Below are positions 1,597 through 52,244 of a stretch of DNA of 64,000 nt, one piece after another. The stretch's first letter is position 1, and each line of letters starts with the position of its first letter. Below the pieces are notes generated by a model that worked only from the letters and a program-made list of their open reading frames with translations, made no database searches and was not told where the DNA came from. The stretch is from Parasitella parasitica NRRL 2501 (taxonomy: Eukaryota; Fungi; Mucoromycota), in NCBI GenBank assembly GCA_025201805.1, contig MU619321.1, positions 84,044 through 148,043 of the forward strand, written 5' to 3'. The translations under genes and the position numbers were made by a program.

Positions 1597-3072
1597 ATGA
1601 CTTTCCTTGCAACTCTTAACCGTATGGCTCCTAATGCCATGAAACGTGCAGCTGCTGTTTCAATGAAGCCTACCTCTGTTGCTCTGTCACAAAAACGATT
1701 CAACTCATCTTCCGGAACTGAGGTTTGATTTACGAATTTAGTTCTTTTAAATCATTTTCTAATTTTTCTCAAATAGATGACCGTTCGCGAGGCTTTGAAC
1801 CAAGCTATCGAGGAAGAAATGATCAAGGATGATAAAGTTTATATTCTCGGTGAAGAGGTTGCTCAATATAATGGCGCTTACAAGGTACATTTAAAAAATC
1901 AAAACAAGATCGCGTATAGTTTGTTAGGGGTGAAGGGGGTGTTTTTAGTGTCGTAATGATGGGATATTCCGGGAAAATAGGACAAAAGATTGGGGTAGAA
2001 TCGGGTTCTGTCGAGGGGAAACATAATCGGAGTTTAAATATATAATGCCCCGCAATTTTATCACTTAGGTTACCAAAGGTTTGTTAGACAAGTTTGGCCC
2101 CAAGCGTGTTATCGATACCCCCATTACTGAAATGGGTTTCGCTGGTATTGCTGTTGGTTCTGCTTTTAGTGGTTTAAAGCCTATTTGTGAATTTATGACC
2201 TTCAACTTTGCTATGCAGGTAAAAAAAAAAAAAAATATGGGGAAGCAATTTTTTTTACTCATTTATCCAATTGAATAGGCTATTGATCAAATTGTGAACT
2301 CTGCTGCTAAAACCCATTATATGTCCGGTGGTATTGTAAAGTGTCCTATCGTTTTCCGTGGCCCTAACGGTGCCGCTGCTGGTGTTGGTGCTCAACATTC
2401 CCAAGATTTCTCTGCTTGGTATGGCTCTGTTCCTGGTCTCAAGGTTGTTTCTCCATGGAATTCTGAAGATGCTAAGGGTTTGTTGAAGGCAGCTATTCGT
2501 GACCCTAATCCTGTTGTAGTTCTCGAAAATGAACTTGAATATGGTACCTCTTATCCTATGTCTGCTGAAGCCCTCAAAGATGATTTTGTTATCCCTATTG
2601 GTAAGGCCAAGATTGAGCGTGAGGGTAAGGACATCACCATTGTCTCTCATTCAAGAACTGTTGGTTTTGCTATGAAGGCCGCTGATCTTTTAGCCAAAAA
2701 CGGTATCTCTGCTGAAGTCATTAACCTCAGATCTATTAAGCCTCTCGATACTGAGACCATCTTCAACTCCATCAAGAAAACTAACCACATTATTTCTGTT
2801 GAAAATGCTTGGGCTGCCTTCGGTGTTGGGTCTGAGATCTCTGCTCAAATCATGGAAAGTAAGTTACGAAAATATTCGGTTGAGCAAATGGGGATGTTGA
2901 TGTTTTTCAATTAGGCGATGCTTTCTGGCATTTGGATGCTCCTATGAGTCGTGTTACTGGCGCTGATGTTCCTACTCCTTATGCTGCTAACCTTGAAGCT
3001 CTTGCTTTCCCTGACGAGAATGTCATTGCTAAGGCTGCTAGAGATAACTTGGACAGAAAAGTTGGTTTCTAA
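1597..3072 (+). CDS. PDB1: Pyruvate dehydrogenase E1 beta subunit, mitochondrial (multi-exon)
   Basis: Presequence-like N-terminus; [68 protein letters not shown]; stop TAA at 3070-3072. Confidence 0.96.
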
Positions 3073-3476
3073 ATTAAATACTGAAAAGTAACTGCTTCTC
3101 TTTCTCTTTACATATTTCATAGATTAAATACTTTTTTTTTCTTTTTCTCTCCTTTCAACTGAAACATCACTGTCATTCATACATAAATAAAAGAAATCAA
3201 TCATCGTTGTTTGTGCAGTTCTGTAAACTTATAAAGAACATTATTAGCTATTAATGGACACTATACGAGCTGTCTACATCCCTTCCCCGAATTACAGCGA
3301 AAAAACTCATTCTTCGCTTCACTATGGCGATTTTTTTTTCGACCTTCGCTCTAAAAGGGAAGGTAAATTTCTCGCGCCTGCAGCGGGTTATCTCACGGTG
3401 CATACTGCTAAAGAAAGATTTTTTTTTGACAAGACAATTTTATTTATTGAATATTTGAATTCAATGAGGATTCACA

Positions 3477-47221: not shown

Positions 47222-48698
47222 ACTTTTAATTTTGTGAAGTGCAAGTTTTTATATGACATATGAAGTAACTACAATACAAAGTAAAATCACGTGATATGCA
47301 TTAGGATATGATAGGATGAGTGTAGAATAAGACTTCGATTATTAGGATAATGATGATATTTTATTTATAAAATTTATGTTATGCTTATACTAATTGGAAG
47401 CTTGCTTTCTAGAAATTGCTATTAATTTATAACATTAATTAGATTGCAAGTTGATTTTGTCGTGGTAAATATATATTGCGACGCTTGAATTGTAAAGCCT
47501 ATCAAAGTCAGTATTTTTGGTACCTGAACGGAGTTGATATGAGTAGATCAAGTTTATTATTTATGAACTGGCATTGCATGTTATATGAAATAAGAAACTT
47601 TTCTTATTATTGCTTTAAAATATTTATGGTTTTGAGACAGAATCCACAAAAGAGAATTTGGGTTGGAAACTATACATACAAGAATGTTGTATTCATATAA
47701 AGGCTACATATGTCATATCTAACATAGTTATAATGTACGGATCATGATATTAATTGTTGATAATTTTTCTACAAATAAGGAATGAGCTACAATTTGTAAT
47801 TAAACCTCTTGCAAAATTATAGGCTTATGCAAAGATTATATCAAGATCAGATCGCGGGATGTCGGGGAGATATCCTACCCAATATTCTTTTTAATGTAGA
47901 ATAGAAGAACAGGTCTTTCCTGGCAATACTGTAGTTTAATAATGTTTGACACTGTTGTGCCAGAAAGGCATGAGATTAAGCAATTATTAGATTGGTAATT
48001 CTTTGTATACAATGACAAGGAATAGGCTATTAATGTACAGTAGAACATGTAATAAACTTGGTATTACATACCAAGTTCAATGTTTAACCATGATGACAAA
48101 TAGTGTTACAATAGATATAATCTAGTATAAAAAGATGGCATTTTCTTATCAATAAACTCATTAGTTTTTGTGTCTGATTTTATTTTTATAAAGTTATACA
48201 TTTTTTTGAGCAGATCATATTTATATATCCTCTGCGCATAACAGACACTTCTTGTCAAAACAGCCGATGTTATGTGGATAAACATTGATTAGGATATACC
48301 TTAGTATTAATAGAGATTGTATCTATCTTATTTCAATAAAAGTCTTCAGTTTTATATCTGGTTTTATTCAGAGAAATTTTTAATTACTTTTTTCATATAA
48401 CATTTCGCTGCGCCCTTTTACAGTGGCACAACAACATTGTTTACTGCAAAAAATTCCAATCAAGCCTCTTGCGCCTGCAGAAAATGAGCACAGAAGCAAT
48501 TGTATATACATGATGAAAGGTATATAAGAAATATGATAAAGAGTACTGCAGAGAAGTTTGGTGGTGTATATGAATAGTACAGAGGAGTAGAGGTAATGTA
48601 GACGTAGTTCAAATGGCAACATGCCACTGAGTTTGATTTACCGCTGCAAATATAAAGGTTTTTATTGAATGAACCACCTATTTCCAATTGAGGAGCAA

Positions 48699-49667
48699 CC
48701 CTGATCGTAGGTTCCTTCATTGGAAAGACTGGCAGGACCCAACTCTTCGTCACTGGAAGCAGGCACCTAAAAAGATATTCCAAGGAATTCAATCAGGTGA
48801 GCTACAACTTCAAACCTTCTTTCTGCCATTATGCCTGCCTTCGGATTCGTCTGGCTCGCCAATAGATGCTCCACCTCCAGTTTTGTTCTCGCCTTTTGTT
48901 CAACAGCTAGAAGTCTTCCAAGACGTCGGTCTTGTCACTAAAATTACTACCAAGACATTTCGACAAGCCTGTGCTTCCGCAACTGTCGCCCCAGCATACT
49001 TGTCTTCCATCGCGTCCACCCACTGGCAATTGTTTTGGAGTTTATGTCTAACGATGGTACAGAGAAATGTAGTCTACCGCTTTATCAACAACTGCATCCC
49101 TCACAAAGCCCGTTTAAACCGTATCTTTCCGGAACTCCATCCTTCCAACCTTTGCATGATCTGCTCCTCCTCAGTTGATTCCAGTGAACACTTTTTGTTT
49201 GACTGCCCTGCCAAAGCATCAGTTTGGCAGGCTGTGATATTTGAGTTTCTCTGGCCAACTGTCACCATTTCCGACATCATCCTGGCAATTAGATCGTTTG
49301 ATTTTTACAACATTCGGTACAGTCAACGAAATGGGGTACCAGCGTCGGTCATCGTATTCATTACCTTGGCCAACATTTGGAGATCCCATTTTCGCACTGT
49401 ATTTGACCGCACACTCTTCACCACAGCAGCAGTATTGGCCGGTATCCGACTCGATATTTCAAAACGTATCGATGAAGATCATGTCCATACACTGTTGTGA
49501 TCATGCTCTTATGAGCTTATTTTTGTTCTTTTTTTATTAACCGTTTATTTAGCCTTGACATATGTATTATCTTATTAGTTACCAAATCATTTTGCGCCCG
49601 TCTCTTGAGGCAGTCTCATCACTGTTCTTTACGCGGAGCAATCAATAAAAACCTTTAAAAAAAAAAA
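48699..49667 (+). mobile_element. 5'-truncated L1/Tx1-clade LINE with poly(A) tail and 14-bp target-site duplication
   Basis: TSD CAATTGAGGAGCAA at 48685-48698 and 49668-49681. Open ORF2 C-terminus with zf-RVT motif CMICSSSVDSSEHFLFDC..VW and NIWRSH; stop at 49500; AATAAA at 49644; poly(A) 49657-49667. Confidence 0.93.
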
Positions 49668-49836
49668 CAATTGAGGAGCAAAGCATGAGCTCCGTAAGAA
49701 ATGCGGGCATGCCTTAACATAGGTCAATAGCTGAGGTGTCATATGATACGTTTTTGAATATAATTTTGTGTAATTTCATTTTTCGTCAAAATTTAAACGG
49801 GGAAAATGAAAATGGATTTAGATTATGTGGCATTAA

Positions 49837-50004
49837 GAGCATCTCTAACGGAGATGCTAATTTTACAAAATTTCCAAAAGAAAATTGGTGAGAGGATGAT
49901 ACTTTCTTTTTTTTTGGACAATTTTACTCACCTGTAATGGTGTATAGGATAAACCGAATACCCACGGCGTATCAAAGAATATCAATGACACACAATGCTT
50001 GCAA
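49837..50004 (-). ncRNA. Candidate Fanzor omega-RNA scaffold region
   Basis: Positional inference only: 168 nt between the Fanzor stop codon and the downstream element end, finishing in an 8-bp hairpin (AGCATCTC-N5-GAGATGCT). Confidence 0.45.
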
Positions 50005-51419
50005 TTATTCTTTTGTATCAAAACGCTGGAATGGTGAAAGACGAGCGTCATTGTTTCTTGCTGCATGTAAAAATATGTTGAGGATGTTTTTTGCAGCCAT
50101 TTTGTCGCGATTCCAAATAATATTACAAGCTACAAGCGGTCTCTTGACACTGTAATACAGAATGTACTCTTCGCTTTGCTGATCTTTGCACAACGTTTTC
50201 AACATTTCTTTTTTTGCAGTTGTTGCAGACTTGACTGGTGAGGTATTCGTCTACCATTTGGACTGTAACACCACGATTTTCTTTACATTTTTGAAGAGCT
50301 TTTATGATAATCTTTGTAGGTCCAGATCTTTTGCCTCTCATGGTAGGTGAAAATCTTCCATCTCCATAGGCAATGATGGTTTTATTTGCCTTAACTGATC
50401 CATCAAGTGGTGGAGAGCGGGAGTAAGAACTGTTGTTTCTCGTTGTTGCCTTCACATTGGTGGACGCACCCGTACGATATTTATTGCTATCATGAGTAAA
50501 CATCTTGACTATTTCGCTGAAGGCTTTTTGCTTCTTTCTATAACATCTAAACTTTAATTTTGAAGACCTATTCCATTTGGTTAACACATTTTTAAAATAT
50601 GTACAAGAGTTTGCTACACTTACTAAAGGCCTCTTTTATAAAATTCATACATTGTATCGTAGGATTGTATACGCTTTCTGCAAGCAATCAAGAATTTTGA
50701 AACTTCTCCGATTTTTAATGAATCCAGTTCTGTTATCATTCTATGAATGTTTGTGTGCTTCGCTTGATGAATCTTTCGAATGTGAGCTGCATCATTAAAC
50801 CCACACAAGTGATAATACTCCTTTTGACTAAGTGATCTCACTCTACCAGCTTGGTCAACTATAGTAAAAACCGTGCTAATTCCAGGGTCTACCGCCCACA
50901 CTTGGCACCCATTGTCAATATCTGTTTTCAGGTCAGATAGCTTTACGGGAAGAGAGCCTTTCTTCTTTTTTGCTGTAATTCTTGAACCACCTTTTCTTTT
51001 CGATGTGGACAGAGTTTACTGGTAGAACTTGCATGATCTGTCTGTTTACATGAAGGACACAGCATTGGTTTGTTGGATTTGTTTTGTTTTTTGAACTCCT
51101 CTAAAGCAACTTTTTTGTCTTCTTTCTGTTGGACTTTCTTAGATAAAGCAAGAGTTTTGCTGGAAGAAGAGCCTATATCATTAAATGAGCTAGCAGTCTT
51201 TTCTGTTGAGCTAGAAGCCTTTGCTGTTGAACTCGAAGCATCGTTGGTGGTGGGAATGCCTGGTGTTGTCAAATCAGCCTCCTCTTTTTGGTGATTCAAA
51301 TCTGCACCTAAAACATAGTAAGACATATATTCTTTTCACAATGTATGTGTTAGATATCTACTTCTTATAGCTCTCTTTCCTTTCCTATCTAGTGGATCGT
51401 CTTTAAGTTTACGCTTCAT
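50005..51419 (-). pseudogene. Fanzor (eukaryotic TnpB/OMEGA RNA-guided RuvC nuclease), disrupted copy
   Basis: RuvC-I VWAVDPG, IIAYGDG, RuvC-II VDEYLTSQVCNNC, Zn finger C..C...CQETAC, RuvC-III WNRDKMAAKNI; N-terminal CPSCKQTDH..SKLC. Frame break at about 50945, 7-bp duplication at 50124-50137, two predicted introns. Confidence 0.9.
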
Positions 51420-52244
51420 ATATGTGTGAGGAGTAAATTCAAGAAAGAAAAAGGAGGGATGAACTTACAACATTCAGTGATGTATTATTTTGAATTTGAA
51501 AAATTAGGCTCAATACAAAATCTCAAGTGCATTACGATCAACACAGTGGATACTCGGAAAAAAAAAAGAGTATAGTGTATAAAGTTTAACTAACTATACA
51601 AACTTTATTAACATTTTCTAAAATGGCCAGTATTTCTGTCCTGACTGCTCATATTAATGTTAGAAGTGTGAGATTTATAGTATGAGATATATAAATGTGG
51701 GTTGAATAAAAGTAGTGAGCACCAGCTCCTGTTTTGAAAGTAGAACGACGTTGCATAAAGAAGAAAAGATAAGTAAAATAATAAAAGAGAATACAATGGA
51801 TTCAAGAGCCAAGGGAGTAATTCAAAGAGCTTCAGAGACAAAAAAGCAAAGCAACAGTAAGCAAGCAGAGACAATTACCAAAAAAGCAGACAAAACATTT
51901 CCGGGTTGTAAAAAAAAAGGATGCTTTAAATGGCTTTTTGTTTAGCATCTCTGTTGGAGATGCTCTAATAAAAAGGCATAACCTCTAACTAATATCTTCA
52001 CAGACTAATAAGCGATCAAAGCACAACCTTCATCCAAAATCTACTTTTTTTAAAGCCTTTTACAATATATGCTTTATGCACCTCTGATCATTCTGTCATT
52101 AAATTGTTTAGAACGAATATAGAAGTAGGCATGGCAAAAGAGCTTGGCATTTAAAGGATGAAAGACTTAATGTGACTGGGTGAAATCTACTGATCACGTC
52201 GGTAAAAGGTCAAATTCTTTTCCTTCTGTTCTTCTTAATATAAG

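Follow-up and report, generated by a model that had tools for sequence, protein, structure and literature searches.

The window analysed is a stretch of 64,000 nucleotides from a contig of the Parasitella parasitica assembly. At positions 49837-51965, it holds a 2129-bp unit bounded by terminal inverted repeats (TIRs), with the triplet TAA outside both ends. The unit, its 24-bp TIRs and the TAA repeats (49834-36 and 51966-68) can be read directly and are as the first-pass annotation had described them. Within the unit, the minus strand carries the pieces of a gene for a Fanzor1 nuclease. Along the forward strand, the features are as follows.

49834-49836, no strand: left target-site duplication TAA, the same as the TAA at 51966-51968 (TWA flank at 50 family ends)
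49837-49860, no strand: left TIR, a hairpin AGCATCTC-N5-GAGATGCT that adjoins the 3' end of the gene (inverted repeat, RNA fold)
49857-49931, minus: candidate spliceosomal intron after the stop codon, 75 nt, donor CAG/GTGAGT, acceptor TTAG/CATCTCC inside the TIR (inferred from the sibling)
49932-50004, minus: candidate omegaRNA scaffold, two hairpins between stop codon and donor (from the fold; putative function)
50005-50123, minus: C-terminal piece with RuvC-III (WNRD) and the stop codon at 50005-07 (ORF 50005-50205; hhalign)
50124-50130, minus: tandem duplication of 7 bp, which shifts the frame within the zinc finger (QCQETAC/SL, then a stop; alignment to the sibling L031)
50131-50567, minus: exon that encodes the GDG strand, the RuvC-II glutamate in its relocated position (VDEYLTSQVC) and the first zinc-finger CxxC (ORF 50123-50587)
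50568-50623, minus: intron within the ORF, 56 nt, GT-AG (mapped from the sibling intron)
50624-50981, minus: exon with RuvC-I (WAVDPG; ORF 50623-50901; hhalign)
50981/50982, no strand: junction of a 1285-bp internal deletion whose two sides are out of frame (window against L031, where 2102-3386 is the missing part; tblastn)
50982-51326, minus: N-terminal remnant, lysine-rich and of low complexity, with a Cys/His knuckle and a start ATG at 51326 (ORF 50943-51326)
51327-51941, minus: upstream non-coding part, presumed promoter and 5' UTR (conserved among copies)
51942-51965, no strand: right TIR, likewise a hairpin (inverted repeat)
51966-51968, no strand: right target-site duplication TAA (read directly; TWA family flank)

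Element ends and target sites

The left TIR, GAGCATCTCTAACGGAGATGCTAA (49837-49860), differs from the inverted complement of 51942-51965 by two mismatches, and the inverted-repeat arms 49836-49860 and 51942-51966, of 25 nt, are 92% complementary. Each TIR is also palindromic in itself. Therefore, a 9-bp-stem hairpin, perfect or near-perfect, can form at each end, and as RNA the left TIR folds with -10.9 kcal/mol (z = -5.7). In the whole assembly of Parasitella parasitica (32.8 Mb, 450 contigs), the terminal motif is found 61 times on one strand, 63 times on the other and not once in a backwards control, so that the element ends are not due to chance. About 60 family termini are found in this assembly. 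At 50 independent ends, the three bases flanking the TIR are T in 47, W in 48 and A in all 50 cases, which bears out, in other copies, the TWA duplications that had been claimed from a single one. Among the complete copies, 13 are flanked left and right by the same triplet, TAA or TTA, and in 3 of 16 a TAA faces a TTA. Inside the element, the last ~110 nt of the upstream part are common to short derivatives of the family and to a transposase-bearing sister (see below).

Directly left of the window element lies the 3' end of a LINE (a non-LTR retrotransposon with a zf-RVT domain, 48688-49700). This LINE is young since its copies on contigs C73, C15 and C66 are 99-100% identical. Beyond the LINE 3' end the left flank is unique, and no paralogous empty site for the window copy was found in the genome.

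The Fanzor1 gene and its lesions

On the minus strand, the three RuvC motifs occur in order, in three separate ORFs. WAVDPG (RuvC-I) is at 50881-50898, with its D codon at 50887-50889. The RuvC-II glutamate is found in VDEYLTSQVCNNC (E codon 50246-50248) and RuvC-III is WNRDKMAAKNI (D codon 50104-50106). The triad (AVDPG, VDEYLTSQVCNNC, WNRDKMAAKNI) is thus present in the order that the first-pass annotation had given. The RuvC-II glutamate precedes the first zinc-finger cysteine by six residues, and this is the Fanzor arrangement (PMC13565253). The family also has the motif [TS][TS]-x-x-C4...RD, which, together with the rule on the glutamate, was stated for Fanzors by Bao and Jurka (PMC3627910). 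As to the zinc finger that had been placed between the RuvC motifs, it is present but split by the 7-bp duplication, and its match to PF07282 reaches only 23.9 and 13 bits. In the sibling, the C-terminal ORF (L031:1174-1503) is uninterrupted and reaches 36.9 bits with the same profile (E = 4.1e-9; cut-off 26.3).

Each exon was searched separately, by reference. Direct phmmer searches with single window pieces gave only weak matches to solved structures, so that a profile search was needed. Compared by phmmer with 1.84 billion representatives, the ORF at 50123-50587 returned 193 relatives, mostly fragments from Mucorales; the full-length ones, of 450-860 aa, carry a Cas12f1-like TNB domain (PF07282) above the Pfam cut-off. 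A profile built from 14 full-length relatives matches the solved Fanzor1 chains SpuFz1 (2e-31), GtFz1 (4.5e-25) and PpFz1 (2.5e-22), and after these TnpB and Cas12f at 1e-5 to 1e-3. All three RuvC pieces of the window match the homologue profile. In hhalign comparisons with the Fanzor1 profile, the RuvC-I piece has a probability of 98.1% (E = 8.6e-14) and the RuvC-III piece one of 94.8% (E = 5.3e-8). The ORF 50123-50587 matches PF07282 with E = 4.5e-5, and the RuvC-III piece of the sibling aligns directly to GtFz1 (E = 0.0037). The TnpB/Fanzor identity proposed earlier thus holds through the homologue profile, and these comparisons support the assignment of the gene to Fanzor1.

With the three solved Fanzor1 proteins, SpuFz1 (8GKH), GtFz1 (9CER) and PpFz1 (9CF0), the family shares the RuvC-I aspartate, the glutamate ahead of the finger, the TNB zinc finger and the RD of RuvC-III. 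As in the solved cases, the gene has introns and reads towards the end of its transposon. In contrast to them, the family is known from its sequence alone and all its copies in the assembly are broken. Fanzors are RNA-guided nucleases, and PpFz1, from Parasitella parasitica itself, has been solved and is active (PMC11423790). The present family is not PpFz1: single window pieces do not match it, and the terminal hairpin motif of the family is absent from the published table of PpFz1 guide RNAs. It had been held that the Fanzor family was probably uncharacterised. It is distinct from PpFz1 and adds a new member to a known kind. Fanzor1 in transposons of Mucorales was described in 2013 (Bao and Jurka, PMC3627910) and Fanzors next to Harbinger transposases have also been published. 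Since Fanzor1 was already known in Mucorales and in the same species, the family is less special than first supposed.

The window element has more than 30 relatives, with 84-97% identity. Only one has the whole interior, a copy of 3655 bp at C70:62495-66149 (L031:1002-4656). Apart from the 1285-bp deletion, the window copy is also without 274 bp near its 5' end when compared with this sibling. In tblastn searches with an 863-aa relative from Rhizomucor, the window copy covers residues 578-860 and the sibling residues 230-862. Because no more than residues 578-860 are covered, the WED/REC half is gone from the window copy. The N-terminal WED and REC domains belong to the family, as residues 230-542 of the homologue P0012 align to the sibling, and they were deleted here. 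The lysine-rich N-terminal remnant is also found in the sibling (ORF 3231-3734 of L031). Apart from C70, only the C41 copy has the 274-nt segment (L031:4292-4565). Its match in the element on contig C71 spans 66 nt and lies immediately upstream of the transposase ORF.

Two smaller lesions add to the deletion. The 7-bp duplication at 50124-50130 is absent from the other copies. In comparison with L031 and with a Parasitella protein (P0002), a TGG codon has become TAG across the splice junction, where 50624 is the last base of the exon. With WED/REC lost, the zinc finger frameshifted and a stop codon at the junction, the window copy is incapable of the role of a transposon nuclease; it is a dead, internally deleted relic. 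The full-length sibling has frameshifts of its own and is without 44 nt that encode the GDG strand. Since this sole full-length sibling is also broken, no intact nuclease of the family, such as intact siblings had been expected to encode, is present in the assembly.

Siblings, transposase and mode of transposition

The copy on contig C96 has the same 1285-bp deletion with different flanks. The shortened form was thus moved in trans, because it is found at another site. Three other deletion classes are each common to 3-5 copies. In addition, there is a family of ~0.6-kb MITEs (L044:523-1147, L049:501-1137, L050:501-1086 and L051:524-1157). In these four copies, 35-43 nt at the start and ~110 nt at the end of the Fanzor element are retained, and TAA duplications are present in 4 of 4 cases. 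Recurrent deletion classes, the C96 copy and MITEs reduced to the ends argue together for a non-autonomous family moved in trans.

A search of the whole genome with PF04827 gave its best match at C71:11558-12230. This match lies inside an element of 1.86 kb (L052:564-2422) that is bounded by both family TIRs. Its ORFs match Plant_tran with 5.7e-22 and 5.7e-21, its transposase gene is decayed, with frameshifts and stops, and its flanks, TAA and TTG, are mismatched. Further decayed transposase copies occur on C98 (81288-83300, beside a fragment of a family end), C49 (64589-66165) and C87 (96354-97125). No intact transposase with family ends was found in the assembly, where every transposase relative has stops. 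Thus, of the autonomous Harbinger that had been predicted to have the same ends, a transposase-bearing element exists but, at 1.86 kb and decayed, it is not intact. The TWA duplication and a PIF/Pong transposase between the same TIRs are the grounds for the Harbinger assignment. Together with the deletion shared by C96 at another site, they uphold the initial proposal of a Harbinger-type element mobilised in trans, and a PIF/Harbinger-type, non-autonomous family is supported.

Taken as a whole, the window unit is very probably a dead and deleted copy of a ~3.65-kb non-autonomous family that carries Fanzor1 and is moved in trans by PIF/Harbinger. The cargo of this family is an intron-containing Fanzor1 gene reading towards one element end. 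A Pong-like PIF/Harbinger transposase, supplied in trans, would recognise the 24-nt ends and move the element by cut-and-paste into TWA sites. Since the assembly has neither an intact transposase nor an intact Fanzor of the family, activity is deduced from relatives.

PIF/Harbinger elements (Pong-like) and Tourist-type MITEs resemble the family in the TWA duplication, the short TIRs and the Plant_tran/DDE_Tnp_4 transposase of the sister, as well as in the many deletion derivatives and the ~0.6-kb MITEs with the same ends. In contrast to them, the family has a gene for an RNA-guided nuclease as cargo, each of its TIRs is itself a hairpin, and it has no intact transposase. A Myb-like ORF1 was not seen either, the one transposase-bearing copy that was read being the 1.86-kb remnant. 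The nearest published case is MCi-5 of Mucor circinelloides, another Fanzor1 element of Mucoraceae that is associated with a Harbinger-type transposase (PMC3627910). MCi-5 is 7.3 kb long, encodes a Fanzor of 1212 aa and lacks clear TIRs, and its 6-bp duplication is putative (PMC3627910). In the present family, the 24-nt TIRs are clean and the TWA duplication is canonical. Its Fanzor is also apparently much shorter, with an alignment that spans residues 230-862 of a relative of 863 aa. The window copy itself is of little consequence, Fanzor1 elements of Mucorales having been catalogued since 2013. What the family offers is a clean Fanzor1 gene in a canonical PIF/Harbinger frame, with exact ends, TWA duplication, transposase-bearing sister and MITEs.

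How the nuclease gene came to lie between these ends may be viewed in another way. IS605 carries TnpA and TnpB together. By analogy, the Fanzor-only elements would not be captures; they would descend by deletion from a composite autonomous element in which a Pong-like transposase and a Fanzor were combined. Several observations point to such an ancestor. The C71 element shares ~175+66 nt with the Fanzor element at the 5' side. At the 3' side, the shared part measures ~280 nt and comprises the ~45 final Fanzor codons with their stop, followed by scaffold, donor, acceptor and TIR. On C98, a transposase copy and a fragment of a Fanzor 3' end have the same orientation, the transposase being ~0.9 kb upstream. 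In Mucor circinelloides, MCi-5 combines a Harbinger transposase with a Fanzor (PMC3627910). However, no copy with both genes is found among the copies read (a set from which C98, C49 and C87 are left out), and the shared 3' stretch could stem from recombination or template switching between element types. The Fanzor 3' remnant in C71 hints at an ancestor with both genes, and we consider this origin possible but less likely than not.

In a quite different model, transposition would proceed through a single strand, as in IS200/IS605 or Helitron2, and the inverted repeat would be a by-product of two palindromes. The perfect or near-perfect 9-bp-stem hairpin at each terminus would fit such a model, and the native partners of TnpB do use terminal hairpins (PMC3627910). 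However, a 3-bp TWA duplication that is constant at both ends marks DDE cut-and-paste, the same ends enclose a PIF/Pong transposase, and no Y1 or HUH gene occurs in any copy seen, all of which makes the single-strand model very improbable. Finally, mobilisation by a Tc1/mariner transposase, suggested by a stretch on C89 (L046:6241-8486) that has the family TIRs and a DDE_3 transposase (E = 9.9e-27), has next to no likelihood and is refuted, since the DDE_3 gene belongs to a nested 1.69-kb element with its own ~70-nt TIRs and TA duplication, inserted in a MITE whose uninterrupted relatives display the empty site, and the family is flanked by TWA and not TA. This Tc1/mariner element (L046:6754-8443) has GGCACA-rich TIRs.

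Other candidates for the partner of the PIF/Harbinger-type family were set aside. Of seven DDE_Tnp_4 loci (L054-L060), none lies within 1.5 kb of a family TIR and none resembles the element ends. Four of them, without TIRs (L055, L056, L057 and L059, on C3, C154, C50 and C247, respectively), are 80-94% alike and form a separate Harbinger-like family, which may be domesticated or decayed. Lone family ends on C32, C52, C75 and C261 run into unrelated DIRS-like, Helitron-like and LINE repeats, with no transposase.

Introns and a candidate guide RNA

Contigs from one public run (X1), considered as RNA by guess, were mapped to L031. They leave out two stretches of 56 nt each, whose CT..AC ends correspond to GT..AG on the gene strand. 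Both skips coincide with frame changes in the tblastn alignment, and the skip homologous to 50568-50623 of the window restores the frame. Introns in Fanzor ORFs are described in the literature searched. A third skip, of 76 nt, again with CT..AC ends (L031 1022-1097), is seen in two contigs of the same run, likewise RNA by guess; the short side of its joint is 25 nt and its anchor is palindromic. It lies after the stop codon, where the donor and the acceptor are kept in most copies with an A-rich stretch between them. The corresponding 75 nt of the window are thus a candidate intron, deduced from the sibling. In the C71 element (L052:2080-2440), the stop codon is preserved together with the ~45 Fanzor codons before it, the two-hairpin region and both splice sites, and the candidate 3' intron has a 37-nt deletion.

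The 169 nt from the stop codon (50005-07) to the element end fold with z = -2.5. The 73 nt that follow the stop form two hairpins, with z = -2.2 in the window and -3.4 in L031, and one compensatory pair change is found in the C70 copy. The candidate guide-RNA region has no match among Rfam families. Substitution divergence among copies is 4.1% in the presumed scaffold, 4.8% in the intron and 3.8% at the ORF end; selection on the presumed scaffold is not apparent from these values, divergence being no lower there than in the neighbouring parts.

The TnpB of IS200/IS605 elements is a homologous nuclease and, as in that system, a guide RNA is expected at the 3' end of the gene, from where it would cross the end of the element into the flank. 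The differences are that the mover of the present family is a DDE transposase making duplications, and not Y1, and that its gene has spliceosomal introns. By analogy with Fanzor1 and TnpB, the intact nuclease would have bound a transcript of the 3' end of its own gene that continued through the TIR into the flank, and would have cut sites where a TWA-containing motif is followed by the flank sequence. It may be imagined, again from the analogy, that cutting at such sites helps the element to persist. The exact ends fix where the guide would start and predict a TWA-containing target motif for the family.

It may also be envisaged that the guide RNA of the family is matured by the spliceosome. 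In such a model, removal of the post-stop intron would drop the A-rich subterminal region and the two-hairpin scaffold would join the terminal hairpin directly. The spliced guide would read ...CCAUUACAG joined to CAUCUCC..., the last two bases of the exon (AG) would rebuild the 5' arm of the terminal hairpin, and a compact scaffold of three hairpins would precede the guide, which derives from the flank. A spliced guide RNA was not found in the Fanzor literature searched, and we regard such maturation as rather doubtful. If the 3' intron is real, host splicing would shape the guide RNA of a transposon.

The closest full-length homologue, from Cokeromyces recurvatus (P0074, locus L061), has no such TIRs and is flanked by poly-A and poly-T tracts. 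At L061:8440-8520, a GTAAGT donor stands a few dozen bases after the likely true stop, and the public Cokeromyces gene model splices from this donor into unrelated downstream sequence.
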